A stretch of 64,000 nucleotides of DNA, taken from NCBI GenBank assembly GCA_965649825.1, contig OZ287696.1, positions 973,101 to 1,037,100 of the forward strand, written 5' to 3'. Positions 5,740 through 59,209 of this stretch are shown in pieces. The stretch's first letter is position 1. The number at the start of each line of letters is the position of its first letter. The position numbers were made by a program, and so were the translations under genes. This DNA comes from Penicillus capitatus (Eukaryota > Plantae > Chlorophyta). The notes below the pieces were generated by a model that searched no databases, was not told the DNA's origin, and saw only the letters and a list, made by a program, of their open reading frames with translations.

Positions 5740-8700
5740 ACCGCTGCCCTGTCTCACCCGCTGCTGTGCTGACTGGAGGATGCCCTCTCTCACCTGGTGC
5801 TGTGCTACTGGAGCTTTCCTATCTCACCTGCTGCTATGCTCACTGGAGGCTGCCGTTTCTCACCTGCCGCTGTGCTGCCCGGAGGCTGCCATGTATCACC
5901 TGCTGCTGTGCTACTAGAGGCTGCCATATATCACCTGCTGCTGTGCCACTGGAGGCTGCCCTATCTCACCTGCTGCCTGACTGCCACTGGAGGATGCTCT
6001 AACTTACCTGCTGCCGTGCTACCGGAGGCTGCCCTGTCTCACCCGCTGCTGTGCTGACTGGAGGATGCCCTCTCTCACCTGGTGCTGTGCTACTGGAGCT
6101 TTCCTATCTCACCTGCTGCTATGCTCACTGGAGGCTGCCGTTTCTCACCTGCTGCTATGCTCACTGGAGGCTGCCGTTTCTCACCTGCCGCTGTGCTACT
6201 AGAGGCTGCCATATATCACCTGCTGCTGTGCCACTGGAGGCTGCCCTATCTCACCTGCTGCCTGACTGCCACTGGAGGATGCTCTAACTTACCTGCTGCT
6301 GTGCCACTGGAGGCTGCCCTATCTCACCTGCTGCCTGACTGCCACTGGAGGATGCCCTGTCTCACCTGCTGCCTGACTGCCACTGGAGGCTGCCCTATCT
6401 CACCTGCTGCCTGACTGCCACTGGAGGATGCCCTATCTCACCTGCTGCCGTGTTACCCGGAGGATGCCCTATCTCACCTGCTGCCGTGTTACCCGGAGGA
6501 TGCCCTGTCTCAGCTGCTGCCCGGAGGATGCCCTGTCTCACCTGCTTTCTGCTGCCCAGAAGATGCCATCTGTCGATCTTCCCGTGCGGAGCTGTCGTGT
6601 CCGATCTTCTTCTCTTACCGCCTGGAGACTGGAGCGTCCTAACATGCCGTCTGCTCATCGAACGCTACCGAGTCTCTCTACCTGGTTCCTTGCCGACTGG
6701 AGGCTGCAGTTCTTTCTTTCTACCGTCTGCTGCCTGGAGACTCCCTGGTTTGTCTACCTGCTGCGTGGTGTGGATGGAGGCCGCAGTCGATCTCGTTCTA
6801 CCTGCGACATCGCTGCCCAGAGGCCACAGTCGTTCTGCATGCTGCCTTGATGTGAATGGGGGGCGCAGTCGCCATACATGCCGCATTGCCGTAAAAGTCC
6901 GTGGTCGTTCTACCTGCTGCCGTACTGAACTGAAGATGAGGAGTCTGTCTACCTGGCGACTTACCATGGATGCAAGGTGACAGTCGCCTTCACTGTTGCC
7001 TTGCAGTCAGTGGATTCCGCAGTAATTCTACCTGCGACCGCGATGTTCGGAGGCCACAGTCGTTCTGCATGCTGCCTTGATGTGAATGGAGGCCGCAGTC
7101 TACCTACCTGCTGCCTTGCCGAGATGCGAGGCGGCTGTCGAAATACCTGCCATCGTGAAGACAACTGGAGGCGGCAAGCGCCCTACTTGCCGCAGGCGAT
7201 CACCAGGAGCCGCAGTCGCCATACTTGCGGCATCGTTCTCTGGACGACGCAATCGCCCTACTTGCTGCCTCGCCGTGGATGCGAGGCGGCTGTCGACATA
7301 CATGCCGCCTCGAAGACAACTGGAGGCGGCTATTGTCCTACTTGCCGCAGACGATCATCAGAAGCTGCAGTCGACATACCAGCCGCCTCGACGACAACTG
7401 GAGGCGGCTATTGTCCTACTTGCCGCAGACGATCATCAGAAGCTGCAGTCGACATACCTGCCTCCTCGAAGACAACTGGAGGCTGCAGTCGCCTATTGTG
7501 CTGCCTCGCCGTAAATGCGAGGCGGCGGATGCCATACCTGCCTACTCGACGACAACTGGAGGCGGCTCTCGTCCTACATGCCGCAGACGATCATTGGAGG
7601 CCGCAGTCGACCTACTTGCTGCCTCGCCGTGGATGCGAGGCGGCGGATGCCCTACCCTGCCTCCGTGACGACAACTGGAGGTGGCTATCTTTCTACCTGC
7701 CGCAAACGATCATCGGCGGCCGCAATCGCCCTACTTGCTGCCTCGCCGTGGATGCGAGGCGGCTGTCGACATACATGCCGCCTCAAAGACAACTGGAGGC
7801 GGCAGTCGACTTACTTGCCGCCCCGCCGTGGATGCGAGGCGGCGGACGACTTACCTGTTCTGTCGCCGCTATAAAGCCGCTGTCCCCCTACTTGCTGCCT
7901 CGCCGCATATGTGAGGCGGTGTATGCCTTGCCCTGCCTCCGTGAGGACAACTGGAGGCGGCAGGCGTCTAACTTGCCGCCTCGCCGTGGATGCGAGGCGG
8001 CTGACGCCTTACCCTGCCTCCGTAAACACAACTGGAGGCGGCAGGCGTCCTACTTGTTGCAGACGATCTCTGGAGGCCTCAGTCGACCTACTTGCCGCAT
8101 CGCCGTGGATGCGAGGCGGCGGATGCCTTACCTGCCTCATCGAAGACAACTAGAGGCGGCTGTCGTCTTACTTGCCACAGATGACAACTGGAGGCGTCAG
8201 ACGTCCTACTTGCCGCCTCGCCGTGGATGCGAGGCGGCAGATGCCTTACCTGCCGCAGACAACAACTGGAGGCGGCTCTCGTCCTACTTGCCGCAGTCGA
8301 TCTATCTGCTGCCTCGCCTTGGATGCAAGGTGGCTGTCGACTTACATGCCTCCATAAAGAAGACTGGAGGCTGCAGTCGTTGTACCTGCTGCCTCGCCGT
8401 GGATGCGAGGCGGCGGATGCCTTACTTGCCGCAGACGACTACTGGAGGCGGCAGGCGCCCTATTTGCCTTGACGATCATTGAAGGCCGCAGTCGCAATAC
8501 CTGCGGCATCGCTGCCTTGAGGACGCAGACGTCCACTTGCTGCCTCGCCGTGGATGCGAGGCGGCGGTCGTCCGACCTGTTGCGTCGCCGCCAAGATGCC
8601 TCAGTCGACTTACCTGCTGCCTCGCCGTGGATACGAGGCGGCGGATTCTCTAATTGCTGCCTCGACGACAACTCGAGTCGTCTCTCGTCCTTTCTGCTGC

Positions 8701-9262
8701 AGACGATCATCGGCAGCCGCCGTCGACCTACTTGCTGCCTCGCCTTGGATGCGAGGCGGCTGTCGACATACCTATTCCGTCGCCGCCAAGAAGCCGCAGT
8801 TGCTATACTTGCTGCCTCGCCTTAGATGCGAGGCGGCGGTCGTCCGACCTGTTCGGTCGCCGTCAAGATGCCGCAGTCGACTTACCTGCTGCCTCGCCGT
8901 GGATGCGAGGCGGCGGATTCTCTAATTGCTGCCTCGACGACAACTGGAGGCGGCAGGCGCCCTATTTGCCGCTGTCGCCTTACTCGCTGCCTCGCCGCAT
9001 ATGCGAGGCGGCGGATGCCTTACCTGCTGCTGCCTTGACGACAACTGGATGCGGCAGTCGTCTCCTTGCCGCAGACGATCATCGGCGGCCGTAATCGCCC
9101 TACTTGCTGCCTCGCCGTGGATGCGAGGCGGCGGATGCTCTACCTGCTGCCGTGAAGACAACTGGAGGCGGCAGGAGCCCTACCTGCCTCGAACACGATC
9201 ATTGGACGCTAAGGTCGTCCTACCCTGTCGCCTTGCCGAGATGCGAGGCGGCTGTGGCCGAC
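5740..9262. repeat. Complex ~35-40 bp GC-rich satellite with higher-order structure and palindromic monomers
   Basis: Left part: ctcacctgctgc.gtgc.actggaggctgcc.tat, with a 285-bp block repeated (5746 versus 6031). Right part: interleaved variants cctacttgctgcctcgccgtggatgcgaggcggc, ..tgccgcctcga.gacaactggaggcggc and cctacttgccgcagacgatcattggaggccgcagtcg. Confidence 0.9.
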
Positions 9263-19400: not shown

Positions 19401-20501
19401 GAAAAGAGTAACGAGTAAACAGCATTCATCGAATGCAATGCAGTCTGGAGCGCATCGTCTCAAATGCCCAATCTATGAAGCAAGATAGACAGGAGTTCGT
19501 AAACGCAAGGTATCATCATTTACCAATATCTTGGCATTGATTTCTGAATAGCGTTGTTGTTGATCTGGCTCGATTCTCGTCAAATCTCGGTATACAGCTT
19601 CGAATCTCAAAGTGACTGCCACTTCCATTTTGATGCCACTGCGGACACTCTGCATGGCTCGTTTGGCATTCCTGTGTCACACAGGAAGTTCCACACACGT
19701 GTAGAAACGATGGCTCAACTTGAATCTCTGATTGAATTCCGCAAAGGTAAAAATGCGTGATCCTTTCCAGTCGATCAAATCCCAGAACTGATTACGATGC
19801 ACAACCGGCACCGCACGATCCACATAACGATCAATTAGCGAAGTCATGTCTGCCACAGGCGTATTGAGTTTGTTACAGAAACGATAGACATCGATCAAAC
19901 GAATCCCTTGACTGCACAAACAAACATCGCACATGCACAATCCCCGCGGTACATACTTGGTCATTGTCTTCTCCAGAACATCAAAGACATCGGCAATGGA
20001 ATCAATCACTGTATCCGGGAGTCGATTGGTCACAACGCGTCGCCTTTTGTTGTTATCCATGACTATCCGTGAGGTTGGGACATCGGCCCAACACGCGATG
20101 TCGAGTGTACCCTTGACCTCTCTGAATTCATCGACCACGGATATTTTCTTAGCCAGGGCAGCACTTTGGGATTCGGGAAGGGGTAGAGCCATGTCGACGG
20201 TAGCTTTCCATACCACACTGCGTTTGCCCACTTCGAGTAAGAGGCCTTTTGCTTGACGGAGATACTCTTCGAAGAGCAACCAGTCCGTTACCACCGGACA
20301 AACGACTGTGCAGGATTCTCCTGCTTTCGGCACGCGGATGTGCGGGATGTCGTTTGTTGGTAGTCCCCATAGAACAATGCGGATCGTGTCAAATTGCTTT
20401 CCTTCCTCGAGAACGCAGTTTTTGAGGTGAATGTTGAAATAACCTTGAAGGCTGCCGACGACGCGCGGCGGCAGATTTGGTCCGCGAACGACAGCTTCCA
20501 T
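16487..20501 (-). CDS. C2CD3: C2CD3-like multi-C2-domain (centriolar) protein, multi-exon
   Basis: The N-terminus LPPRVVGSLQGYF...IRIVLWG...FEEYLRQAKGLLLEV...GTLDI resembles the C2CD3 N-terminal C2 domain. A further C2-like block lies in ORF 17666-18793. Joining ORFs 19677-20513, 18868-19305, 17666-18793 and 16487-17560 into one gene is inferred. Confidence 0.6.
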
Positions 20502-22800
20502 TCGACCAGTCAAATGAAACTGAGTGAGCGTGGCGCTGAATCCGCAAAGTCAGGCAGGCATTAACACAACGCCATCTACAATAAGAGGTAAATGATCCGC
20601 TCTACTATCTCCCCGGAAAACTGGGGAAGATCGGCGTATTCCATTCCTAGCAGAACATGCACTGCTGCTGTCAGATCGCGTTGGATTGTACCAACGAAGT
20701 GGAAGCTTGAAATGACGCATGCGACATCCGCTGCATAACAAGCCAAGAGAGAAGAACGTTGCCGGAATGCGATCTCCGTTAAACAGTCTATTCGCGACCC
20801 CTGTCGATCGCTTGTTTTGATGAGGGAGGGTGATGACTACGCCTAGATCTGATCGTCGATCGTAGAATTCGACGCTGTCGAGCGTCTCCAAAGGCGGGCC
20901 GAGAAGGGCTAGATTTCTGCACGATCGTTCAAACGTGCCGTCGTTGTCGACAGAACTCCGATCGGCGTCGTTTGTCGTCGCGATCGCAATGATTTATGCG
21001 ATCGTCTTCGAAAAAACGGTATGTAGTCGTCATATTGCTGCACAAGGCCTCGCGACAGCGGAAACGATTAATCGGAAGTAAGGACTGGATGATGATCGGA
21101 TGTACGATGTTAGATCGCTAGACTTTGAACGATGTATCGGCGAATCCTGTATATCCTCGTCGTACTCAGAGATTATCGATACTGCGATCAATCGTTTCAC
21201 CACGCTTTGCACACTTCAAAGAAAATGCTTGATAGCTGAAGATTCCGATTTCGAAGTCTAGCAAAACGCCGAACTGGTCAACAAACTTGATAACTGAGAT
21301 CTCTACACTGGGTCCGGAGATGTCGATTCACCTGTCCTTTGGTGTAAACTTGAGTACAATAACGGCCAAAGAGAATCTGCTCCTCGTCACATTGATCTCG
21401 TCGCGATACCACGAGAAGGTCGCGAAAAAAGAAAATTCCCTGCTACACAGAAAGGGAGCGTGAATCAGACAGCGATCAAGTCAACATTAAGAAGTGCAAA
21501 AACATCGAGTAAATTGAGCAGGTCATCATAACCAGAATCTTTTACAATTGAGAAGATTTCGGAAGCGAAACTGTTCTGCGCCGCTACCAAATCGGGCAGA
21601 AACGAACGCCGCTACGAATCGGCGGCCTCGATAACGATCGAATCGCCCGTGTCAACTAATGTGAGAAAACACAACAATCGATGACGCCCGATTCGCAAAA
21701 TTAAGATAAACCAGATAGATCGACAACGACTGGCAACAGGTGAACAAATCGAAATCGACGATCATCAATCGGACTCGTAGATATCAAACACGTTGAACTC
21801 GCTTAACACTGATCAACTAGAATCTCATCTCATTCGCCTCGCTGTGCCCATAGTCAATCCATACTTTGTTGTTCATGACAAAGAGTTTGATTATCAAGTT
21901 GATAAAGATAAGGGACACTGCACTTATCTCCAAATAACTAATAGCTCATTGACAAAGTTAAAGACATAAAAACTATCTTTTCTTCTTCCGATCATGTCGC
22001 TGTCGCAATATTTGACAAGAACATTTGACATTGTTGAAGTAGGCAGATCTGTCTACTATGGTGGTATCATTGTGAGAGTGATCAAACATGCTCTATTAGT
22101 AAATCGTACGTAGATCCAAACATATGACAGACGGTCGATCATCATCGATCGTCGATTAAGCGCGTTCGATCATCATCGATCATCAGCTATCGACTGTTTT
22201 GAGATTTAAGGCGACACCGATGTTTACATTTTTCGTCTAAGACAATTGTCGCTCATCATTACGATTGTATTACTCTTGGCCGCATCTTTAGTGGCGACGA
22301 ACTTTTGTCGATGAATATGAGCGGCTTCGATCAATTTACGTAGGCAACGATCGGGGTCGTAAAACTGGATTTCTATGCAGTACATGAAAACTACATATCT
22401 GAAAGCTACCTAACTGCCGGACACATCTTATGATCTGTAAGGTAACAACAGACGCCATCGATCAACGAACAGACGTTCGGGAATGCCTTTCTGGTTCAAG
22501 ATACAGAGGGGTATGTGTTGTCTGGCATTCTAATGTCTGCTAGTTCCGTGTGCCTGTCCTAATCGATGCTACATCTGTATACGCGAAGGACAATTTTTTA
22601 CGGATAGAGATCGACGTCATCAAGCGCGAGATTCGACAACAGAATTCACACAATCACGAACACTCGACACAGCCAACTTATATTTCTTAAGTGACTACAT
22701 AGAGATAGAACACCTCTCGGATCGTGAGCCCATGGTTGTCACATATCAATGCCATCATTGCTAGCCTCCATGCATCGGTTATCCATTCGACATGTTTCGC

Positions 22801-24735
22801 TCATGCATTTGTCCCTTCGTCCGAGGAATTCTCGTCAACACGCATTCCTCTCGTGATAAACCGTCTGCGTCGCAGAAAGCGTCTGAGTTCTGGATGGAAA
22901 TCTCTGACGATTGGCCGAACAGTGAGCGTGCGATCCGGCAGAGTCGCCACGATGGTATCCCCATCCTTCACTTCCAAATCTCGGCCATACTTTGTAAACA
23001 CCTTTCGCATCGATCTGAGCTTCAACTTTCTTCCCACCGTCAGATTGCAGCTGCGTTTCAGGATATAGACAAACCAATTAAGCTGCTGAAAATTGTCAGC
23101 CAGTGCATAGTACTCCAGCAATCCAATCGTCAGCCGATCGTAATACCGCACGATGTGCTCGACAGGCCAATGTGTAATGTAACCATTTCCAAAGGCTGTC
23201 CATGCGTTTCTTTTGGAAAACTTCACGAATTCATTCGCCAAGAAACACTCACGCAACTGAAGGGTTGGAATGTACAGCAGCGGGCGTAGCAGCAGTCTGC
23301 TTGTTTCGGCGATGGACGCCGGCATGTCAAAGGGAAGAAATTCGCGGCCGATCTCGTATCCAAGAAATGCTGCTCGATTCGAAGTGTCTCTGTGATTCGA
23401 GGCATGATGCACTTGGATACTTACGATCGTTGTATCCATTCGCATTCGTCGGAGTTGTGTGATGACGTCTGCCGCGACAGCGTTCGCTTCTGCCTCGTTG
23501 CCTCTGAGACCAATAAAGAATGACGCTCCACAACGGACAAAGCGCAGCATTCGTTCACTCGGCGGAGTAAAGGGTGCTGCGATTGGCCACTTGTGTGGTT
23601 TCTTGAAATCTGAGTAGGCATTTCGGTATATCTCCAGCCACTTGTCGAGGGTATCCAAGTAACAGTTGAGTAGGACAGGAGTGATGCCCATCTCTTTGGG
23701 TACAGCAACGAAGCTCTCAGGTTCAAGACCGAAGGTGCTGATGTACCCAATGTCAAGCACTTTGTACAGAAGCCGTTCGAAATGGGGATCCTGGATGCAT
23801 TGACAGGCAGCCTTTACCATTTCGAATCCTTTGAACTGCTGCAAGGCTACCGTCAAATCGACCACGATGTACCAGTCCATTCCAAGGATGTGGTTTCGGA
23901 GATTCCTCAGGGCGACTTGCCGACCACCTCCTGGACGAAACCCAAACGAAAAGCTGGAGAAACGCGGTTCGTAGATGGCATCCAACACCAATCGAATGCT
24001 GTCCAGCACGATCTCATCACGCGGAGACGGAATCGCATAGCGAACTTTCCTGCCGCTCGGTAATCGAAAAGATTGAAACTGTTCTGGCACGAAGGAAAAA
24101 TCTGGCGATCGAAGAAGTTTGCCCAGTTCGATGATCCATCTCTGATTGATGTCTTCTGTCTGAAGTCGACGTTGACGGGTCATGTACTTTGACAAACGGC
24201 TCACGCGTCGCTTTCTTTCCATGACACCACGAAAGAGGACAGACTCGTGCGCCAGCATACGCAGCAGGAAGTTGTTCGGCAGCTTGGGATGGTCTCTGTT
24301 CTTTCGAAAGAGGTCTTCCAACACAGGTACTCCGCAGAGAGGGGACGGAATCGATGCGTCGTCATCTGGCGCCGATGGCGTTGCGGAAATCGACGGGTGT
24401 TCGAATCGATCGAAGGGCGATACGGGCGCGGTCGATTGTGTGAGATGAAGATGGACAGCAAGGTTGTCGTGTCGCGGAAATTCCTGTAGCAAATCTTGCA
24501 ACTCATCGCCGAGAGTAGGCCCCTTGGCAAAGGCTTGTTTATGAAAAGCTGCGTCTCTCAGTACTGAGCGTAAACCGCACAGAAGTACAAGTTGACGTCG
24601 AGTGCTTCCAGATCGATGACGCAACATGAGAGGCCTTCGCCTACCGTAGAACGCGATTTGTGTCGTACATGTTAAAGGTATGCGTCGAAGAGACGTTTGT
24701 ACGGAACTGCACGCAAGAGGAGCCATCGTCCCCAT
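22801..24735 (-). CDS. Nuclear-encoded group II intron maturase-like protein (degenerate RT plus domain X, no endonuclease domain) with putative organellar targeting peptide
   Basis: Single 644-aa ORF with RT motifs YAIPSPRDEIV, IYEPRFSSFSFGFRPG, ITPVLLNCYLDTLD, FVRCGASFFIG (YADD lost) and FLGY. Domain X reads YYALADNFQQLNWFVYILKRSCNLTVGRKLKLRSMRKVFTKYG. The first 60 aa contain no D/E. Confidence 0.9.
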   Translation of the reverse strand: MGTMAPLACSSVQTSLRRIPLTCTTQIAFYGRRRPLMLRHRSGSTRRQLVLLCGLRSVLRDAAFHKQAFAKGPTLGDELQDLLQEFPRHDNLAVHLHLTQSTAPVSPFDRFEHPSISATPSAPDDDASIPSPLCGVPVLEDLFRKNRDHPKLPNNFLLRMLAHESVLFRGVMERKRRVSRLSKYMTRQRRLQTEDINQRWIIELGKLLRSPDFSFVPEQFQSFRLPSGRKVRYAIPSPRDEIVLDSIRLVLDAIYEPRFSSFSFGFRPGGGRQVALRNLRNHILGMDWYIVVDLTVALQQFKGFEMVKAACQCIQDPHFERLLYKVLDIGYISTFGLEPESFVAVPKEMGITPVLLNCYLDTLDKWLEIYRNAYSDFKKPHKWPIAAPFTPPSERMLRFVRCGASFFIGLRGNEAEANAVAADVITQLRRMRMDTTIVSIQVHHASNHRDTSNRAAFLGYEIGREFLPFDMPASIAETSRLLLRPLLYIPTLQLRECFLANEFVKFSKRNAWTAFGNGYITHWPVEHIVRYYDRLTIGLLEYYALADNFQQLNWFVYILKRSCNLTVGRKLKLRSMRKVFTKYGRDLEVKDGDTIVATLPDRTLTVRPIVRDFHPELRRFLRRRRFITRGMRVDENSSDEGTNA

Positions 24736-25642: not shown

Positions 25643-26229
25643 TCAACCTCTGCCGAAGAATGACCACTTCTTCTGAGCAGGTTGCTTCGCAACGGGTTGT
25701 TTCACAGGAGGCTTCTTTGCAACGGGTTGTTTCACAGGAGGCTTCTTTGCAACGGGTTGTTTCACAGGAGGCTTCTTCGCAAAAAGAGGTTTCTTCGGAG
25801 GTGCTTTTCTGCCAACCGGCCTTGGAGCCGATCTTGGAGTGGCGGGTGCTGCTTTCCCGTCTTGCATCTTGGCAAGCTGCCGACTCGCTGGACCCGTGAT
25901 ATTGAACAGCACCCAGGCAATAGCAGGAACAAATAGAAACAGGACTGCTCCTAAACGTGTGTCTCCAGCTGCTATTGTCGCGAATTCTTGAGCGGCCTCG
26001 ACGGGCTGCGATGCTAATAGTGTCGATGAGACGGCAAGTCCGGCAATAGCCAACGGCGCCTACATAACGCACAGGTCTCACCACTTCACGGATCAAACCC
26101 GCACACATCAACGCCGGCTTCATTTTTGTGGTTTTGGATCCGCAGGGTATCTCGAACGCGGAGTGGCGTCAAACATGGGGCCGTTCTCAACGAGGTGCCA
26201 AACACGGATCTCTGCGTCACAGCCTTCAT
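25643..26229 (-). CDS. psbY: Photosystem II subunit PsbY precursor with Lys/Pro-rich C-terminal tail
   Basis: Transit peptide MKAVTQRSVFGTSLRTAP..., one 47-bp intron, a thylakoid signal ending VEA, and the PsbY core DTRLGAVLFLFVPAIAWVLFNITGPASRQLAKM. Confidence 0.85.
25684..25780. repeat. 30-bp coding tandem repeat x3 (KKPPVKQPVA) in PsbY
   Basis: gcttc(tt)tgcaacgggttgtttcacaggag repeated three times, nearly perfectly. Confidence 0.9.
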
Positions 26230-26843
26230 TTTCGATGTCTTGATACGAGCTCAAATCGAACGTGGCTAGACGAGAAAGCGACAGCGTTCGTTTCGCAGAT
26301 CCAGATCGACCCGTTAACGGATCATTATGTCCATTGACGAGATGTCACCGTCTCATGGACTAGAACCTGTTTAGCGCCCATTCTCTGCAGATTCCTGTAT
26401 TTCTATCGTCCTGCATACGTTTCATGCTAGATGTTAGAGATACGTGTCGATTTCTCACTGACCGTTATGTGAGAAGTGTGATGTGTTGCACGGATTGGAA
26501 TGCCGTGGAGAGATCAGGACGGTTTTGTCAGGTACGCTATCGCGGCGGCGTCGAATTTCGTAGAGTCTCTCCAATCGTCGATGTACCGTTGTCGAGTGCC
26601 CGTCTTGCGCTAAATGCTCTCAATCTGAGTCCACAGGCGTGTGGTCTATTACAAGATTGACATTATTGTCGCACGTGTGCTTGTCTGGCTCCAATTCTCT
26701 GCCTGAGGCCGAAGCAGTATTCGACGCCAGTCCCTCCGAAGCGACGGACGCGTGCACCTTCCGAACGGAAGAGGTATCCGCGGCGTACGATACAAACACC
26801 TCGCCCTAGACGACGCGAGATGCGTTATCGGTTAAACGCCGCG

Positions 26844-29618
26844 ATGGAAGGACCCTTAACGGACAGGCGACCGAATTCTTAGTGTATCGAACGTCCATGT
26901 GTGATGCAGTGGGCATTGGAGTGTCGGAGAGATGCCTCGTCACGATAGCCGTGGAACAAAAAAGCGAAAGCTGAAACGAGGCGGCGCTCGTTGCGGTAGG
27001 CGCCACGTCGGATGTGTTTTCTTGAGGAATCGAATGTCTAGGCGACGCTCTAAAACAACGCCTCGAGCAGCTGCGCACCGTTCCTTCCGAAAAGCACGTG
27101 GTCGGGCAGCGTGTCTGGGTGAAAGTGACATCCTACTGTGACTGGCCTGGAATTATTTGGAGCATTGACCTATGTCTAAAGAAGATCGTGCCTGAGCTCA
27201 TCAACTCCTACACACAAGGCATGGAATCGGTACATCGCTGATGATCGCATGATGGATGTGGTCATCTGTAGGGAGCATTCTAGTGAGGTTCTATGGGGAT
27301 CAAAGTAGTATGTTTTGCAAGAAATCCACGATCAAATTGATCGAGGATGAATACGAGCGACGTTACCGGGCATTGAAGTATTGGGGAAAGCAGGACAAGA
27401 AGCGTGATCAGAAGGCGACATGGGCACTGGAGGACCTCGATACTTCTTTGGCTGACTGTGAGGCCGAGGTCCAGAGAATGCTTCAGCTGCAGACCCACGT
27501 TCTGGGAAACAAGAGCGGCGATTGTATCCTCTGTGCTCTCTGTGAAGAGGACGGTGCTCAGATGAAGTGCAGAGTCTGTGAACGCTATCTCCATCCGCTG
27601 TGTTTGACACCTGCTGCCCTGACGCCAGATGACATTCCTGACGGCGGCCAATGGTTATGTCCCTCGTGTGGAGAAGAAAACCACGTAAGCACGAATGTCT
27701 ATGCATAACATACAAGACATGGCTTTCTCAGGTGCATCGGGATCCGGCAGATGTCGAAGAGGAAAAGATCGAGAGAATGGGGTTGACACCGGACTGGATC
27801 ATTCATGCAGGAGCTTTTCGCGTGTTTCAGCTCCAGGAACCTACACCCGACTTTCCTTACATCCGTGGACTCCTTGACCCATGCACCAACAGCAAGATTG
27901 CTCCCAATATTCCTGCAGAACGTTTGTTTGATAAGAACGATGATGGATTGAAGCTTTCCAATAAATGGAATGGTTACCACATTGTTCTCAACCCAGACTT
28001 CAAGGCTCATGTACTCGACGCTCTTTTTCGTTGTTCTGGTCTGTGAGTGCTGTGTGTGGATGTAGATCCAATGGAGATTTGTGAATCGAGCCATCGATGA
28101 AGTGGAGAATGATTCTGTGCCAGGTGTCCTGCTCATCTGTCGCAATTCGACGGACACCGCGTATTTTCAACGATTGATGCCCTATCCGAGAGTTCTCCTA
28201 CGCCGGAACAGCATTCGATTCAAGGACTATGACAAAACCCCAATCGGATTTGGGATTGTGGTGTTTTGCATTATTAAGCATGACTACCACACAGTAACGA
28301 AGAGATTCATGGAGAATTTTGCACCCTTCGGTGAACCCAATATCGTTATTGACAAGTGTAAGCGCATGCATGTATGATGTGACAGATGATGATGATCTCT
28401 ATGTATGCATCATAGCGTGGTTGCTGAGTGCATCCTTTGAGTCTCTGTTAAGCCGGCTGTATCAGTACGCAAATAGACACCATCGTGATCACTGGATACA
28501 ATGCTGTCAGTGCGAAAAGTGGAGAATCGTGTCGTACGAGGCTCTTCTCAATGCAAAAAACATGAACTGGGAATGCAAAGATCTCAAGTGCGATTCTGTC
28601 ATTGCGTTTTTCTGTGTGTATGACGCGTGGGTGGATGTACAGTCCACCGTACTCAAGCTGTGCCACCATCCAGACGAAGGCAGAATTGCATGGGGCGCGC
28701 TACGCTGTGTTATCAGAGGATAAAGGTTTCTTCGATGAGGCGCTGCCGGCAACATCACCCCATCAGTTTCAACCGGAGGGCTGCTCGGCAGACAGTCCTA
28801 TGGACGAACTGCCGCCCGTTCTGTCTCGGCTCCTTCAGACGCATGCCATTACTGGAATGGATACGGCCGGACAGAATTCTCAATGGCAGGCTTGTTCATA
28901 TACGCTGTCTGTCTCCGAAGGCATTCTTCCCGAAGGGAATGGCAAGATGCCGACAAAGCATCAGCTCAAAGCACTCAGTAATGTACTGACATCCAAGATC
29001 ACACAGTGTGCCCCCAATGTGAGACTGCCAAAGGAGGGATTCGTTATCAAGGCAGTGCTCGTGGACAGCGTCACATACAATACTGTCCTGCGCTGGATAC
29101 AACATCTGACAGTGCATTCTCCCATCAAGAATACAACACCCGTCAAGCGTTCGCTAGAGCACAGCCCCAATCACGGAATCCCCAAAAAAGCGAAACTCTT
29201 GTCCAGTAGTAGCCTTCGCAAGAAGATCAAGGCTCAGAATGGCGGTCAAGTCAAGTCTAGTCTAGAATTGGAGCGCGAGCTGAACAAGGCAGCGCATCGC
29301 CGAATGATGGATTATATGTGTTTAGAGTCTGGTCACAAGGAGAGCCTTTCGATGCAGAAGGCGGTGGCCCTTCAGGAAGCAGAGGGCGTGTTGGAAATGG
29401 CACGCGAACAGTTGAAGAACAAATGCTTGGATGAAGAACGCGTCATCGGCGAGAGAATAAAACTGGATACAGAACTCATGAAAAAGCGTCGTACATCCGA
29501 TGAAGAATACCTTCATGTAGAAGACACTCTAAGATCACTTCAATCTCAATTAGAACAGGTTCATGGAAGACAATCTTCCTCCATGCCATCAAACCTGGAG
29601 GCTGCGCAAGTTTCCTAA
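26844..29618 (+). CDS. Chromatin-reader-fused DNA N6-adenine methyltransferase (PWWP + PHD + phage-type Dam + zf-CW + coiled coil), start uncertain
   Basis: PWWP: RVWVKVTSYCDWPGII...VRFYGD. PHD: CALC...CRVCERYLHPLC...WLCPSC. Dam: LTPDWI...LDPC...DDGLKLSNKWNG...VLNPDF...RAIDE...LLICRNSTDTAYFQ. CW: WIQCCQCEKWR...WEC. Confidence 0.8.
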
Positions 29619-30121: not shown

Positions 30122-31205
30122 TTACGCTCTCAATTTCGCCAGACTGATTCTCAGTGCTGGACCCATTGTCGAACAGAGGTAACACGTCTTCCAATAACCC
30201 CCCTTTGCACCAGTTGGCCTGTTAGCATCGATCGACACCTGCAGTCAACCTCAATCCTCAGCACTGACCAATGCTCCATACAACAATCCAACCTGAACGG
30301 CCTTGAGATTCTCGTAGATATCTTTAGCGCCAAAAGAAGCTTTGCCAATCGGAATGTGCAGGTTCCCATGCTTATCCAATCTGTACTCCACTTTCCCTCC
30401 CTTGAAATCTTTGATGGTCTAGAAACAGGATCTCGGAGTGGCACGACGTGAACGAGGGCGCATTGCATTGGCGAGATCTGTTGTCACAGTACCAGCTTTT
30501 GGATTGGGCATCAATCCCCTTGGACCCAGCACACGACCCAACTTCGCCACCTTGGGCATCATGTCTGGCGTGGCAATGGCCTTGTCAAAATCTATGAATC
30601 CTTCAGCGATCTCCGAAATCAATAGCTCTCCGCCAACAATATCCGCTCCGGCATCTTTGGCCTCCTGTTCCTTATCGCCAGGGCACAGAACAGCAATCCG
30701 CAGTTCCTTCCCTGTCCCCTTGGGCAAAGTGACTGCACGATCATGCCTCTGCAACATGGACGGATTGAGGAGACGTCTGACCTGTGGCTCTGAGTTGCTG
30801 ATCGGCGTAACGCGGATCCAAGTTCGTTTTGCCATGAAGCTCCACGGTCTCATCGAACTTCGCCGATGCCATCTCTTTGAGTGCATCGATCGCCTCGATG
30901 GGCGATAACTCTCCTGTCGGTTTGTTATTATCGAGTCCTTTGAATCGCCGCGATCGTTTCTTTGGGGACACGGCGACAGCGGGTTGCGATTTCTTGCGAG
31001 GGACGACGCTATCTGCGACGCCCGCCCCTTCCCCTTCGATCGAATCTTCAGCCGCTTCCGTCGCTGCCGCGTACACTCTCCATTGCCTCGGTCGCGTGGA
31101 TACCCATATCGCGTTACTTCGCACTGCCCGTCCGACAGAGCGTGTTGTCAGCGGTCGATGGCAGGGCGCGACGGAAACGCATGCGAGGCGAGCGCTGCGC
31201 GTCAT
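30122..31205 (-). CDS. rpl1: Plastid 50S ribosomal protein L1
   Basis: Transit peptide, KFDETVELH...[38 protein letters not shown] and STMGP. Three introns, one of them GC-AG. Confidence 0.95.
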
Positions 31206-51989: not shown

Positions 51990-54900
51990 CTACAATTTGG
52001 AAAGCACAATGAGGAAGGCAAGGGCACTGAACACAGATCCAAAAAAGATGAGACTGCGAGCAGTGAGTCCCAATTTGTGCTTATTCTCGTTTTCTTCATC
52101 AGCTCCTGTCTCATTCGTTTCTCCATTGAGTCCCACCAATTCTCTGTTAACTTCGATGCTCTGCATAAAGGCATCGATCTGTTTTCGCGTGCTGTTGTTT
52201 GCAAGTCTATTGAGACGGCTGTGCGTTCGAGAGAGAAAAAGAATGATTTCTGAAATGAGTGAATCGTCCTGATTCTGAACTTGGTCGATGGTCTTCAGTG
52301 CGTCACCGAGGATATCTGTTGCCTTGGTGAGGTCTCTCTTTCGAGCAGATTCCATCGACTGATCCACTGCTTTGATAGCAATGGGCTTGATCTTCCTGCG
52401 TTCTTTGATGACATTTTTGGGCGCCCGCTTTACGCGAAGCATGGAGACTGGTGTCTTGAACCATCGACGTTTCTGAGTGTGGAAGAAGGAGAAGGAGTAC
52501 TCGAAGAGATCGGCATCGCCCTTCCATTCATCCAGCGACAACTTCAGCTTCACGGAGTGACTGGATCCAGGTTTCATATCGGGAAGAGCTGCTGTCCATG
52601 TAGGAAAGCTCTCGATGCGCCAGCCATTGGATTTGATATCGATCGACGTATTCATCCAGGACGACGGCGAGATGTGCAGTCGCACACCCTGAAGCACGAT
52701 ACCCTTGAGCCCCTTGACCACGTCTTCTACCGCACTGTCCATTTCCTCTAGGGAGTTGATGAGATACTTGGCCCCACTCGTCAAACTCGAGATCGGATCT
52801 GTCTTGCTGGCTTCTGTCGGACCGACGATGAATGTCATGACCTTGACAGGTGCAATGGGATGTGTAATGTATGGAGCCAACAGTTCATCGTAGCGCGGAT
52901 CTTTCACCATGCAGACCGAGAAAGCAGCAGAGAAGAGCAGGATAAGACGATCGGATCCGTTCGTCACCTCTTCCATCTGTTCCAATCCAGCACGGAGACT
53001 GGAGTAAAGATCTGCTGGTTGGCCTGAACTGGCAATGCTCTCTAGGAAAGGCTGCACATCTTGCACGGTCGATGCATCGACTTCGATGGCAGGGAGTGTC
53101 TTTGTATCGCCGTCTCTGCTGACCACCGTGATCAGTGTGACGGTGTATCCGTCGTCCAAGACAAGCTTCTTTATGATCTCCGTCGTCGTCATGGCCTGTG
53201 TTAGAAGGATAGGCACTTCACGTTCGATGAGTGTCGTGTAATCGACAGCATCCAATACAGCGACAATTGTCAGATGGTGTGGTTTCGCTGGCCTGTAAGG
53301 AGAGCGAGCAGTGATGGTGAGCTCAGGATGGTAATGCACTTCCTCTTCAAGAACGGACTGCGGTTTGTGCTTAATGGACGCCAATTGTCCATGATCCGAG
53401 ATGTGTTCTTCGTCAGGCTCCAATGTACCGATGGTCTCGGCCACGAGTTGAGCCGCAGAGAATTGTTTTCTGTCCTCCACGAGATTCGTCAGATAGTGTT
53501 CGATTTTGGCATGTTTGGATATGATTTCTTTGATCGGCGACTGCTGGGCAACACTCGAGTACTCAGATAGAATTCTGAACTTCGTCGTTTCGACCAAGGC
53601 ATCGCCAACTGCATTCTTGCCTAGATGCAGCATGCTGGCGTGGACGGACTCTTCCATCATGTCCAGCAAGAAATCGATCTCCTTGACGACCTTCTCCTTT
53701 GTGCGGGTGGTTGAAACGGTGGAGCTGAACTTCTTGCTCTTTCCTGCACGGAGACTGTAATAATGCCCCGAAACTTTCATGAAATCTGTCACATCAATCA
53801 TCTGCGCTTTCGCCGACTCCAAGGCCGCTGATCCAAGAGACAGCACAAAACGAATATCCAGATGGTCTCCATACTTAAGAGATGGCATACTGACACCTGA
53901 GCCCGTGAAGTGGGCTTCTCCATGAACACTACTGATTTCTTTGAGGGTCGCTCCGCCCAGAAGCGTCGCATTGATATCAATCTTCTTACAGAAAGTCGTA
54001 TCGATCCAGAGAACGGCTTTGCGAGCAGCATCGCCAATATCACTGTCCCTTTTCTCTTTCGTCTCGCCCTCCACGCTGTCCAGCTGCGCATGGTGTCCAC
54101 CACTGAGCTGACTAACACTTGAGATCACTTTCTTCGAAGCTTCATCGAGGCCTGAACTGAAAGTGAAGATTGTCAACGGCGATGCGCCATCCTTCAGTTG
54201 CGTTTGTGCTGTCTCTTCTAAGGCGACAGTATCCTCTCCTTCCTGGAGTGTGCTCGTCACCACCCAGAACAGAACAGAAACGGTGACGTTCGGTGTTTGA
54301 CTCTCTGTGATGCCATCTTCCAGAACAAGGCTATAGTCTGCAGTACCTGATGCTTCCGTTTCTTCAATTGCTTTCATAACATCTGGAATCTGTTCTTTGT
54401 CAAAATCTTCACTGCTATAGATTGGCGTCAATTTCTCACTCCAGATATAGATACTGACACTGCGAGTACCTCTTCTGCTAGCAACGAGTGAGAGCAGTGC
54501 TTTTGCAATTTTCTGAGTAATCTCGGCGTCGGCAGTTGCTGAAGCGTCAAGGATGATCGTCACGTGGGCATCGATCAAATGTCCTGTGGGTTTCGGACTG
54601 CCGAGTGTCATCTTGACCGTCACATACGTATCGGATGCGTTGACGATGGGCGGTTGATCGAAATCCACCTCAAGCACTTCTTCAGGAACAACTGGCCTCT
54701 CTAGCAGTTCCTCTTCCTTCTCAGCTACAAACAGACACAGATGCACCTGTCAGTCACAGACACATCACTCTTTCCAACACGATCTCACTTTTTCTCTGCG
54801 ACATGACAGGTTTCTCTGTTGCTGCAAAGAAAAGAGAAGTCCGTTAGTTTTGTGGGGCAAGAGAAGCGTCGCTCACTTTTGACGGCCGTCGGGGCAACGT

Positions 54901-57900
54901 AGGCAGGGACATCCAATTTCTTACGGACCTGACGGATATGTTTGACCACACGGTGTTTCGTTTCTTCGCCGATGTAGAGAGAGTAGATCATACGCACGAG
55001 GTCTTCCATATCTTGGACGACTTCATGGATCACCACATCTTCTTTCTCGATGCGAATGATGACGGAAATGTTGAAGGCCAGTTTGGAAAGAGCGTCGTCC
55101 AGTTTGTCATCGCGGATCAACTTTTCGATGTCCTTCAGCGTGTCATCTGTCGAGTTGCGTACATCGATCCTCTGCTGCAGCATCTCGGGCTCGACTCTGC
55201 TGACCACGAAGGGCACGAGTTGTTTGTCCCACGTGAAGAAGGACCGCATGTCATAGTACTTAAAGGATGCGCTGAAGACGATTTGGGCGTACATATGTTC
55301 ATCCATCTCGAAGACCATATCAAGGACCAGTCCTTCGCCGTAATGCACATCGGGAAGATCGTATTGACCCTTTGGATTTGGAGCTTGGCCGGCGACGCTT
55401 GTCAAGGACACGTGGTCACTTTCCTGGACTTCGATCTGGACTCTCTTGGCGGCTGTGTAGAAACAGGCGCGTTCGATGCGACGTGCACCGTCTGTCCAGT
55501 CCTTCTGTTCGGGTACCGTCGAGAGACGGGATTTCACCCAAGGCTGGTAGCGATCAAAATACGCTGCCGGAGATTCCTTGTCCATGAGAAGAGGGACAAA
55601 TGTCAATGGATAGTCCAGACGACGCATCTGGTCGTCAAACAGCTTGGCATCTTCCTCAGCTGTCTCGATCTTCAATGATTTTCCCACCAGGCAGATCATG
55701 GCCAGATCGTGTTGCTCTGAAATATCTTCCAGAATGGCGAAGCCTTCGATCACGGCAGCGATGAAACTTCCTTCGCCGCCCGGCGTAATCGCGTCAAAGA
55801 TGCTTTCGATCTGTTCGGCTGTCACATCAGAAAAGAGTGATTTCTCGAGAGTGACGGTGACCTCCACTCCATAGACAACGATGGAAATGTAGGCACTCTT
55901 GAATACGTCTGATTTCTCATAGCGTTTCCATGTATGCACCACAATGGTCTTCATTGTTGTTAACTGCTCAGCTGTCACTGTCTCAGATCCATCCACAATG
56001 AAGACAACAGAGGTCGGCGTTGCGGCGGCTGGCAATGGAATGGGTTCCAGTGCAAGACTGACGTTAAACGTCTGAGGGGCAGATGAGATTTCTTGTGGAG
56101 CTTTGCGGTAACTCGCCGTAAAGACATCGTCTACCGGACGCGTCGGAATCTTCTCGATCGTGTCGACGAACTCTTTTCGGCTTTGCTCTCTCGAATCCGT
56201 ATCGTAATACTTCTCGATGCGGAACACGCGTCCCCTTGTTCCCTTGGATCTTTGAGTGACGAGCAAATCTCTCAAGCTCTCGAGCTTCAGACATGCGTCT
56301 CTGAGCGAGGTGTCTCCTGCCTGGACGTCCTCCAGCGCGGTACGCACAGAAATCAAATCCGAAAGCAGGTCTGCTTTGAAATCGCCCTTCTTATACGTGG
56401 ACTGAGCGACAACATCGATCGCCTTCGACACGATATCGATGACGGCCGCCACACTTTTTTCACTCATACATTGCTTCGATGCCTTGCGGAACATCTCGGC
56501 GACTTCTTTCTCCAGCATGCGCTTCGTGGTCGTTGCGGAGGTCTTCTTGCTGACGACGTGGTAATCGGTCAGACGATGTGTCTCGCATGTAATGGCATCG
56601 AAGTAAGAAACATCCACATTGAGAAGTTTGCTGAGCTCTATGTCTTTCGGCGCCTTTAGTGTCAAGAGGACTTCTCGACTCTCGTCTTTGAACATATCTA
56701 CAAACGAGACAGCGGCGTAATGGCCTGAGAGTGCGTCTGCCATAGGAAAGACGTTTTGGATCGTGATGTTCTTGATTGCCGTATCGATCTCGATCTTCAC
56801 CTTCTTCGCCGCCACACTTAACAGACCACCAGCTGCGTCGCCAAAACTCGATGCAATGTCGGATTCGTCACGGAGGATGTAGAGTTGTCCTTTGCCAGCT
56901 TCGGCGATCTCTTTCAGCAGTTTATCATCGAAATCGCCCAGACCAAAGGTGTAGACGGAGACAGGGTACTCGGATGCGGACAGCATCTGTTTAAGCTCCT
57001 TTACGATGGTGTCGCGGCCGGAGCTCGGAACGCCATCGGTCAGCAGGAAAACGACTTGCGTTCCTCCGCATTTGGGATGGGCGATCTGCTCCTCGATGCC
57101 TTTCTGAAGACCCGACCAAAGCTGCGTTCCGCCGTCTGCAACCACGTTATCCAACTGCTTTTTCAGATCAGCGACGTCGATGTCGGACGCTTTCTTTAAC
57201 TTCTGAAGCGTCACGACATCATTCGAAAAAAGAATCACACCGAGGGAGATCTTGGAATTTTTCTGAGCTAAGAGCCAGTCAATCATGTGCTTCTGTGTCT
57301 GGATCATAAGATCAAAAGGATCGCCGTACATCGAACCGGACTTGTCCAACACGGACGTCACATAGAGTGGCGGCTGCTCTTGTTTGAGATTCGGAGCATG
57401 AATTTTGAGCAGCACTTCGATTTCGTTATAGTCGTCATGTTCAACAATGTCACTCACGGCATAGGTAAATTTCATTTGGAATTTTGATTTGACTTCGCTA
57501 GGCAACACCCTCTGCTTCGCCTCCTTCTGTGTCTTGAGCTGCGACATGGTCGTCGTGGCTTCAACGGTTTCGTACTTGGCGTCTGTCAAACCCGTTCTCT
57601 GTTTCTTAACGGCGTCAATAACGCCATCCAATGTGGCTCTTCCCTCGACTGTCACCTCTGGCGAATTCTCGAGCTGTTTCCGCACCGTTTCCATGTCTTT
57701 CCGCACCGATTCGAGATAAGGAACCTTGGTGTAGCCGCCTTTAACAACGTAGAGTTCTGTGTCTTCGATCTTCTGAACACATGTCGGCAGATCGTCCTGT
57801 GCGAGACTCGTTGCCGCGACTTCGAGCCGATCGGCAACATCATAACGAACAGCTTGCACGGCGACCGGTGTGAGCTCTGTACGCACTGTCGGTACCGTTC

Positions 57901-58988
57901 CGTTTCGCTGGACGACGTCGGTGTTCACATTTCGAGTGACCTCTTCGAAACTGGATGCATCGACAAACGATTCCTGGATCTCGAGGGCATCGCCTTCTTC
58001 GCATGTGTTGCTCAATCGCATTTCGATGACGATATCGCGATGCTCTTGCATAAACAAGTCACCCAGATATAACACCGTACCGTCATCTGTCTCGTCCACT
58101 TTACCTCCACTGCGGACGGCCGTCACTTTTGCATTGCCTGTCGGTTTTATCCAGTAATGCATGTTGAATGCCACCGAGGTCAGCAGCCCTACACCCAAGT
58201 CACTTCACATCTGCGCAGGCCGCGGCCGTCGTCTTACCGCCGAGCGCGGAACCGAATGCCTTAGGAACGTCGACTTCATCGGAGAGAATATACAAGACGC
58301 CTTTGCCGACGTCGGCGATTTCGTTGAGCAAATCGAAATCGAGGTCTTCGCCAAATCCGAAGGTGTAAATCGCAACGGTCTCTTTTGCCGCGGCTACCAT
58401 CCGCTGAACCGCGGCCGTAATGTGATTCGAGTCTCTCTCGCCGCGCGTCGGTCTGCCATCGGTGAAAACGAACACGACGCGAACATAGTTCCCCTGTTCA
58501 TCCGACGTCTGCTGTTGGATGCCGGCCTGGATGCCAGCCAATAGGTTCGTTAGACCTTCTGCTGTCGTCGCATTGATTTCTTTCTGAATCTCCGTCTTCG
58601 TTTCGTCCGTCAATTCTTGAAGCGGCGTCAATTCCTGAGCTTTGGTGCTGAAGATAACGGAACCGAATTTGTGTCCGACCGTTTCGCGCGAGAGTCGCTC
58701 AACGAGATAGTTATTCGTCGCCTGAAGCAGCTGGAGCTTCGACTCAACCATAGAACCGGACACATCCATGACGGACGTCAGCGACAGCACGGGACGCGCG
58801 TCGCGATTTCCGGCGGCAGCGATGCGGAGAACCGCCGTCGCCTTTTGGGCCTCACAGCTGTAGTCCGTATACTCATACTCAAGCGATGTTTTAATAGGGG
58901 GTTCGTCATTCGCTGCCAAACTGGCTGTCCATAAAAGAAGGCAGGCGATGTTCAGCAAAAGTAAGCAGGGCAGAAACGCAAAAGACAT
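51990..58988 (-). CDS. ~2276-aa type I membrane protein with five tandem VWA modules
   Basis: Signal peptide MSFAFLPCLLLLNIACLLLWTASLA. Three introns (49, 55 and 64 bp) join the three large ORFs in frame. VWA beta1 motifs MDVSGSM, LDKSGSM, VDGSETV, LDASATA and LDAVDYT. C-terminal hydrophobic segment. Confidence 0.8.
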
Positions 58989-59209
58989 GATGAAGAATGC
59001 TGAGACCGGTGTAATCTGACCCGATTTTATATCCACTTAATGTCGCCATTATACATGGCTGCGTGCATTTTCGGCCGTTCTGTCTGTCGCGCCTGTTGGC
59101 TCATCCGCGACTTTTTTATGTTTCGAATCTCGACCGTATCTCTTTTGCCTTCATTGAGTAGTGACGTCCCTCTCGCGTCTCGCTCCCCATCTCTGTTCGC
59201 GCTTCGAAC

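Follow-up and report, generated by a model that had tools for sequence, protein, structure and literature searches.

A Candidate Chromatin-docked DNA Adenine Methyltransferase of the Chlorophyte-type Dam Family in Penicillus capitatus

Introduction

Whether eukaryotes carry writers of DNA N6-methyladenine (6mA) besides the MT-A70 enzyme AMT1 is a matter of ongoing debate, and the question is posed here by one gene in a window of 64,000 nucleotides from the green alga Penicillus capitatus (contig OZ287696.1 of assembly GCA_965649825.1, positions 973,101 to 1,037,100 of the forward strand; coordinates below are those of the window). An original prediction from the nucleotide sequence had placed at 26844-29618 a fusion of the histone reader domains PWWP, PHD and CW with a phage-type Dam methyltransferase core carrying the variant motif NPDF. 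The observation is confirmed, with corrections to the start codon and to the donor of intron 2, and the interpretation built on it is partly supported when taken as a whole. The gene is assigned with high confidence, in both its identity and its family, to chlorophyte-type Dam family 1; family and architecture were already published in 2011 and 2016, and the gene does not in itself represent anything new in kind. The explanation that best accounts for the locus as a whole, to which we give an even chance, is that of a nuclear chlorophyte gene for a chromatin-docked DNA adenine methyltransferase.

Results

Relationship of the Methyltransferase Core to Phage T1-type Dam

Spliced reading of the region 26844-29618 gives a single open frame of 790 codons with a coding sequence of 2,373 nucleotides, distributed over seven exons on the plus strand (26932-29618), ending in a TAA stop and encoding a product of 790 amino acids. 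The Dam-like core, related to PF05869, occupies residues 233-420 (27774..28450, +) across introns 4 and 5, and the strings on which the original prediction relied (TPDWI, LLDPC, DDGL...W.G and STDTAYFQ) are all found in the protein. LLDPCTN (27870..27890, +) is the equivalent of motif I; its DPC is shared by at least 97% of family sequences, and its counterpart is LDPFSS in the Alteromonas phage enzyme described below and, when matched by eye, DLDAAAS in T1 Dam. The segment CRNSTDTAYFQRL (28138..28176, +) is among the most conserved blocks of the family and aligns to ADNSTAWF of T1 Dam, with the block CRNSTDT.YFQRL.PYPR and the DPC of motif I being near-invariant across the family.

Homologues of the protein number 69 at E ≤ 1e-3, reaching 4.9e-85, and those that are named (Astrephomene, Trebouxia and Ostreobium, 47-74% identical) are all chlorophytes. 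A search of representative sequences gives 2,699 matches at E ≤ 1e-3, of which 84 reach E ≤ 1e-30 (best 1.5e-88) and the best 150 are all eukaryote-like, and a word-indexed homology search with the family profile finds nothing beyond the eukaryotic family. The Dam assignment is made because of remote-homology evidence and not a direct Pfam match, the core being too diverged for PF05869 membership under Pfam's own rule. The core of the window protein matches the phage profile phrog_111 ("DNA methyltransferase") with an E value of 2.4e-7; the same profile is matched by 16 of 25 family members (best E 2.1e-11), and PF05869 itself by 5 of these 25 (best E 8.6e-4). Phage T1 Dam, taken as a yardstick, scores 1.7e-70 against PF05869 and 3.9e-86 against phrog_111. 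Neither PF02086 nor PF05063 is matched in any of the 25 relatives, and PF05063 is unmatched in the window protein also, in agreement with the earlier claim that the core is distinct from MT-A70 enzymes.

Alignment of the family profile with T1 Dam by hhalign gives a probability of 75.7% with motif IV aligned, and pairs LNPEF with LNPPY, VNRAIDEVE with VKKAIEQME and CRNST with ADNST (family and T1 Dam, respectively). A tblastn search with the core against 50,697 phage genomes returned one protein, ORF140 of Alteromonas phage vB_AmeM_PT11-V22 (L004, 493-1014; 173 amino acids, motif IV NHPF), which is a PF05869 member above cut-off (33.3 compared with 28.1 bits) and the closest phage relative found for the algal family. 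The family profile aligns to ORF140 with a probability of 94.6% and E 6.8e-8 over 134 columns, extending from motif I to a C-terminal GE..P.

The fold was approached by modeling the Astrephomene orthologue (67% identical, motif IV NPEF) with AlphaFold2, the exon peptides of the window protein serving as rows of the alignment. The model has a predicted local distance difference test score (pLDDT) of 84, a predicted template modeling score of 0.78 and strands alternating with helices. In a Foldseek comparison with predicted viral structures the top matches are methyltransferases of phages, among which several carry the annotation DNA N-6-adenine methyltransferase; eight matches are at E ≤ 1e-3 (best 1.4e-7), with template modeling (TM) scores of 0.42-0.61. 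Model and matches together bear out the expected Rossmann methyltransferase fold, as far as a predicted structure of an orthologue can indicate it. By profile comparison the nearest relatives of the core are shown to be DNA adenine methyltransferases, and the putative catalytic and S-adenosylmethionine (SAM)-site signatures are retained. On these alignments and this model the core is best described as a predicted Rossmann-fold amino-methyltransferase of about 190 residues for which no relatives closer than the phage T1-type Dam enzymes were detected; of the earlier assignment to the phage-type Dam family, the kinship stands through phrog_111, hhalign and Foldseek, and the match to the PF05869 hidden Markov model does not.

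Motif IV and Its Conservation in the Family

Motif IV is encoded at 27990..28001 (+) by AAC CCA GAC TTC, reading NPDF as predicted, and aligns to NPPY of T1 Dam. The canonical two-proline form (D/N/S)PP(Y/F/W) is not present here, although the motif keeps its asparagine, its first proline and its aromatic residue. Among the first 69 homologues the motif occurs as NPDF, NPDY, NPEF, NPEY, KPEY, NPPY, NPPF, NPSY and NPAY. Across 33 full domains, position three is occupied by E in 11, P in 10, D in 7, S in 3 and A in 1, with one further domain reading NAPF; at least 97% have the asparagine and at least 90% the first proline, and the motif ends without exception in Y or F. The pattern of the family is N-P-x-[Y/F], with the second proline replaced in 22 of the 33, and the NHPF of ORF140 illustrates that the motif varies among phage members as well. 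The suggestion that NPDF might be a peculiarity of this copy is not upheld, as an acidic residue recurs in the 11 domains with E and the 7 with D.

A rough neighbor-joining tree, without support values, groups NP[D/E][Y/F] with the clade that carries PWWP and PHD domains, and the NPPY and NPSY sequences in the same tree are proteins where Dam-CW alone was detected. Judged from these alignments, D or E at the third position appears typical of the PWWP-PHD clade, and NPDF reads as a clade signature and not as decay. By analogy with enzymes of the M.TaqI type, contacts to the target amino group and base would be made by residue one, by the carbonyl of the proline next to it and by the aromatic ring, and probably not by the third residue.

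The replacement of the second proline by D or E in the PWWP-PHD clade would also be compatible with a catalytically dead core that binds SAM, a flipped base or 6mA-containing DNA as one module of a multivalent chromatin reader, possibly as the partner of another enzyme in the manner in which METTL14 or AMT6/7 serve their active partners. The divergence of the core from PF05869 could be taken in the same sense, and inactive paralogues under selection have precedent in METTL14, AMT6/7 and DAMT2 with its EPPH motif. This explanation is considered unlikely. The asparagine, proline and aromatic residue of motif IV and the DPC of motif I are retained family-wide, and the position that is replaced is the most variable one, being proline in about one-third of the relatives, with variation in the phage member (NHPF) as well.

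Reader Domains and the C-terminal Tail

Reader domains were called by a Pfam scan of the spliced protein with curated gathering cut-offs, which PWWP (PF00855), PHD (PF00628) and zf-CW (PF07496) each pass, so that all three are present as had been proposed. The PWWP domain spans residues 43-115 (27104..27375, +) across intron 2, with E 2.7e-8, 34.7 bits compared with a cut-off of 25.6 bits, and the motif DWPG. Its comparison with solved structures gives a weak alignment only, to NSD2; the positions Y..W...Y are retained and are taken by us, by eye against LEDGF, to be the aromatic cage. The zf-CW domain (residues 434-476, 28490..28673, +, across intron 6; E 4.3e-7) was aligned with the CW domains of ASHH2 and MORC3, and all three tryptophans are retained.

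The PHD finger comprises residues 168-213 (27532..27669, +; E 7.6e-6), and its nearest solved structures are those of PHF21A/BHC80 (E 7e-6), WSTF, DPF3, CHD4 and AIRE. The PHD fingers of these five proteins bind unmethylated, not methylated, lysine 4 of histone H3 (H3K4). The finger seems most similar to readers of unmethylated H3K4 (H3K4me0), which suggests a targeting of the DNMT3 kind. The original assignment of the reader domains to methylated H3K36 and H3K4 does not seem to fit the PHD finger, its nearest structures being those of H3K4me0 binders.

PWWP, PHD, methyltransferase and CW are genuinely fused, and many full-length relatives have this architecture, with Dam-CW present in nearly all. 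Two family members, P0074 and P0075, have the PWWP-PHD cassette duplicated.

C-terminal to the zf-CW domain the protein is poorly conserved, with one long α-helix at residues 701-776 (76 residues, 29346..29573, +) that is a candidate coiled coil. In a single-sequence AlphaFold2 prediction of the last exon the helix is continuous with a pLDDT of 70-93, and the remaining tail is of low confidence. The coiled-coil tail proposed originally is reasonable for the last ~80 residues, where the predicted helix may form such a structure, and not for the rest of the tail.

Orthologous Loci and Selection

Two orthologous loci were compared with the window, L002 from a Logan assembly and L005 from an ENA assembly. 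L002 is ~79% identical over residues 81-312, from the PWWP domain to the core, and has the same seven exons, the six introns at identical codon positions and the motif NPDF; L005 also shares all six intron positions and is syntenic with the window, an intron-maturase-like gene adjoining the Dam orthologue. Synonymous sites are saturated between the window and L002 (proportion of synonymous differences ~0.78), such that the ratio of non-synonymous to synonymous divergence (dN/dS) is not computable; at non-synonymous sites the divergence amounts to 0.06-0.08 for the four domains, compared with 0.37 for the tail.

The closer L005 differs from the window at 2-10% of exon sites and 11-38% of intron sites. 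Over residues 1-480 there are 72 synonymous differences and 2 non-synonymous ones (dN/dS 0.006), compared with 59 and 36 in the tail (dN/dS 0.15). From this comparison the locus can be taken as a real gene under very strong purifying selection, and the way in which the divergence is distributed confirms the exon model. The core, with 34 synonymous differences and 1 non-synonymous (dN/dS 0.007), is so constrained that the alternative of a catalytically altered scaffold, offered in the original prediction, is weakened; the value fits an enzyme, though it is compatible with a binding module.

Gene Model, Splicing and Start Codon

The window has the structure of a eukaryotic gene in this region, with short open frames that change phase at GT...AG boundaries, and in-silico splicing gives six introns of 46-58 bp each. 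Exon 1 (26932..26995, +) opens with the ATG at 26932 and encodes the basic N terminus MPRHDSRGTKKRKLKRGGARC, its start and junction being the same in L002 and L005. Exon 2 (27042..27218, +) holds the first half of the PWWP domain, and exon 3 (27272..27684, +) its second half, a linker and the PHD finger. The core is divided between exon 4 (27732..28010, +), which contains the N-terminal half and ends in ...NPDFKAH, and exon 5 (28066..28357, +) with the C-terminal half. Exon 6 (28416..28587, +) provides a helical linker and the first part of zf-CW, and exon 7 (28643..29618, +) the end of zf-CW, the poorly conserved tail, the long helix and the TAA.

The start codon had been placed at 26844, which is wrong, the conserved start being 26932; this ATG and the sequence downstream of it are kept in the near-identical relative L005. 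A start at 26844 was rejected: it would require an intron of 28 bp, compared with 39-58 bp for the introns of the gene and its orthologues, and in L005 the putative 28-bp intron has a 1-bp indel and the ATG is TTG. The 5' leader holds at this position (26844-26882) an upstream open reading frame of 12 codons followed by a stop, MEGPLTDRRPNS, and the 5' flank at 26700-26931 is ~92% identical to L005.

Intron 2 (27219..27271, +) is of the GC-AG type with the donor GCATGG. The GC donor at 27219 gives an in-frame junction with an intact PWWP domain, which no GT donor does, and the junction is backed by orthologous PWWP domains. An alternative GT donor at 27174, giving a model of 775 amino acids, was rejected, as it removes CLKKIVPELINSYTQ, a segment found in 13 orthologous PWWP domains. 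The donor of intron 2 is GT in both orthologous loci (GTAGGA in L002, GTTTGG in L005), and intron 5 of L002 (10621-10666) has the donor GCAAGC where the window has GTAAGC. Because the window intron 2 and the L002 intron 5 each use GC where their counterparts have GT, GC-AG introns seem to be tolerated in this lineage of very short introns (39-58 bp).

The exon model is a product of in-silico splicing, and an exact-sequence lookup of four candidate full-length products in a collection of 15 billion proteins found none on record; it could in principle have joined two adjacent genes, one for a PWWP-PHD reader and one for a Dam-CW protein. An in-frame ATG at 27651, upstream of exon 4, and the MMETSP transcript P0007 of the NPPY clade, which encodes Dam-CW only, could be read in this way. 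Such a misjoining is highly improbable, however, given that the gap between the PHD and Dam exons is 47 bp with canonical GT-AG ends, that the junction is kept in L002 and L005, and that the synonymous-only divergence continues across it. PHD and Dam are also part of one protein in independent models of the gene from Astrephomene, Trebouxia and a EukProt genome, and in the many full-length representatives with the order PWWP-PHD-Dam-CW.

Neighboring Genes in the Window

A nuclear PsbY-like gene adjoins the Dam-like gene at 25646-26053 (-) (PF06298, E 2.6e-9), as it adjoins the Dam orthologue in L002. Its lysine- and proline-rich C-terminal tail (KKPPVKQPVA) derives from a 30-bp tandem repeat of 3.3 copies at 25685-25782. 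On the other side of the Dam gene an exon at 30422-30886 (-) codes for a ribosomal protein L1 of the bacterial type (PF00687, E 3.7e-32), which is presumably organelle-targeted; in L002 the L1 exon lies on the opposite side of PsbY, and the different placement therefore indicates a local rearrangement.

At 22804-24735 (-) lies a single-exon open reading frame (ORF) of 644 amino acids in which the only domain is that of type II intron maturases (PF01348, E 1.9e-14); the domain scan gave no reverse-transcriptase match in it. From its sequence it looks like a nuclear gene of the nMAT type, and its orthologues are 83% (L005) and 60% (L002 assembly) identical. An exon at 19680-20513 (-) has the N-terminal C2 domain of the basal-body protein C2CD3, which suggests a flagellated alga. 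Two neighboring large ORFs at 54788-59036 (-) contain von Willebrand A domains. The stretch 5743-9252 consists of GC-rich tandem repeats, a 36-bp unit in 21.6 copies followed by interleaved arrays of 40, 78 and 118 bp, and is overlapped by an ORF of 501 amino acids (6977-8482) with no Pfam match. No rRNA or tRNA was found in the 64-kb window.

Discussion

Family Membership and Earlier Descriptions

The clade to which the gene belongs was defined as "chlorophyte-type Dam" by Iyer, Zhang and Aravind (BioEssays 2016, PMC4738411). The paper gives fusion to PWWP and ZfCW/PHD modules as the hallmark of family 1, describes the clade as usually single-copy, proposes that it is able to establish inter-nucleosomal 6mA, and groups it with PCIF1 and relates it to prokaryotic enzymes of the DpnM type; the family was first listed in a 2011 survey by these authors. 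The earlier statement that algal fusions of Dam with readers had been described computationally is accurate, since this paper covers exactly this family. Text searches of the paper located no discussion of the NP[D/E][Y/F] form of motif IV or of its association with PWWP-PHD. A full-text search on the clade name returns only PMC4738411 and literature searches found no functional study of the chlorophyte-type Dam family, consistent with the original remark that no biochemical test of the clade was known. Two sets of candidate relatives were set aside: the non-specific adenine methyltransferases Hia5 and Hin1523, considered as possible PF05869 members, have FxGxG and DPPY and are α-class Dam-like (PMC3299994), and the Phytophthora proteins DAMT1-3 belong to N6-adenineMlase (PF10237).

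Proposed Mechanism and Substrate

The product runs from a short basic N terminus through PWWP, PHD, the methyltransferase core and zf-CW to a poorly conserved tail with a long helix. In the mechanism considered most likely, the three reader modules would dock the protein on nucleosomes bearing a particular state of the H3 tail, the core would use SAM to methylate adenines of the surrounding DNA at the exocyclic N6, and the terminal helix may mediate oligomerization. A PWWP domain together with a PHD finger of the H3K4me0 type would predict targeting to gene bodies, away from H3K4me3. Catalytic activity, DNA adenine as the substrate and the histone marks read are what we infer, and the chance that the protein is an active writer of 6mA in DNA is put at slightly less than even.

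Several results weigh against this activity. Characterized amino-methyltransferases do not usually have an acidic residue at the third position of motif IV. PF05869 has no match at E ≤ 1 in the window protein by Pfam, an NCBIfam scan of the core gave no methyltransferase family, and a search of PDB sequences with the family profile gave nothing relevant beyond a chance match; no solved relative of T1 Dam was found. The structural model is that of the Astrephomene orthologue and not of the window protein, and its Foldseek comparison with the PDB is weak, E. coli Dam being matched with a probability of 0.90 and a TM score of 0.34 and METTL5 and METTL16 equally well. A motif of the (D/N)PP(Y/F) type is also present in RNA- and protein-acting enzymes (PMC3299994), and because of this the substrate is not fixed by motif IV. 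Furthermore, robust 6mA was reported to be restricted to species encoding AMT1 (Nat Genet 2025, PMC12695648), the MT-A70 enzyme currently credited with algal 6mA. Since the chlorophytes sampled in that study (Chlamydomonas, Micromonas, Ostreococcus and Chlorella) all encode AMT1, any contribution of the Dam-like family is confounded.

Some of these points would be accommodated by an active amino-methyltransferase with a substrate other than DNA adenine, either nascent RNA, modified to N6-methyladenosine (m6A) or its 2'-O-methylated form (m6Am), or a protein amino group. RNA methylation would then be co-transcriptional, with the chromatin readers placing the enzyme on transcribed genes. The motif IV type common to RNA and protein enzymes, the equally weak PDB matches to METTL5, METTL16 and E. 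coli Dam, and a chlorophyte 6mA already explained by AMT1 are compatible with such a role, as are the grouping with PCIF1 in PMC4738411 and the PCIF1-like giant-virus proteins among the weaker viral Foldseek matches (E 6e-4 to 4e-2). The nearest sequence-profile relatives are nevertheless phage DNA adenine methyltransferases (PF05869/phrog_111), and an RNA-binding domain was not found in the Pfam scan of the window protein; we regard a non-DNA substrate as an outside chance.

A DNA-directed writer could also be extended to a second, AMT1-independent pathway of algal adenine methylation, in which a phage-derived Dam-like enzyme with DNMT3-like steering would have a distinct sequence or substrate preference through its NP[D/E][Y/F] loop. 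The PWWP domain would read H3K36 methylation and, with a PHD finger of the H3K4me0 type and the CW finger, send the enzyme to gene bodies instead of the zone that lies downstream of transcription start sites and is flanked by H3K4me3. This extension is doubtful at present.

If eukaryotes have a second 6mA writer, the clearest candidate for it is the chlorophyte-type Dam family, which is ancient in green algae, fused to readers and very tightly constrained. The locus contributes a fully resolved gene model with two orthologous loci, NPDF as a probable clade signature instead of decay, and a targeting hypothesis built on PWWP and a PHD finger of the H3K4me0 type; alone it does not settle whether such a second writer exists.

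Comparison with Known Systems

The established 6mA writer AMT1/MTA1 (MT-A70) would share both the mark and the organisms with the algal protein but is of a different methyltransferase family. AMT1 acts with the partners AMT6/7 and p1/p2, is without PWWP, PHD and CW domains and, unlike the Dam-like family, is experimentally supported. Both are linked to chromatin state, 6mA being located in linkers between H3K4me3 nucleosomes (PMC12695648). DNMT3A/B have a targeting logic that appears similar, with PWWP and a PHD finger of the H3K4me0 type on a DNA methyltransferase, but their catalytic domain is unrelated and their target base is another (cytosine-5), such that the likeness is an analogy of architecture and not homology of the enzyme.

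PCIF1, the enzyme of cap-adjacent m6Am in RNA, belongs to the same broad group in the classification of Iyer et al. The algal protein differs in lacking a WW domain and any sequence-profile match to PCIF1 and in its motif IV context, and the relationship is more distant than that to PF05869. The α-class Dam/DpnM enzymes (PF02086) differ in that the algal motif I reads LLDPCTN and not FxGxG and no inserted domain precedes motif IV; the DpnM link is that drawn by Iyer et al., whereas the link detectable here is to PF05869, with PF02086 unmatched in the 25 relatives.

Phage T1-type Dam has the same order of motifs as the algal core, with profile homology over nearly the whole domain. A TP.. N terminus, the (L)DP.. 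of motif I and the N-x-x-aromatic motif IV occur in both T1 Dam (NPPY) and ORF140 (NHPF), and the ..L...W.G.. stretch, the FV..AI.E.E helix and the ..NST..WF block are common to the algal core and T1 Dam. T1 Dam methylates GATC. The algal core is ~24-32% identical to the phage enzymes and has D at the third position of motif IV; the algal gene, unlike phage Dam, is eukaryotic, has introns and is fused to chromatin readers. Closest of all is chlorophyte-type Dam family 1, with the same core, the same host group and the same fusion to PWWP and ZfCW/PHD, from which the gene described here shows essentially no difference.

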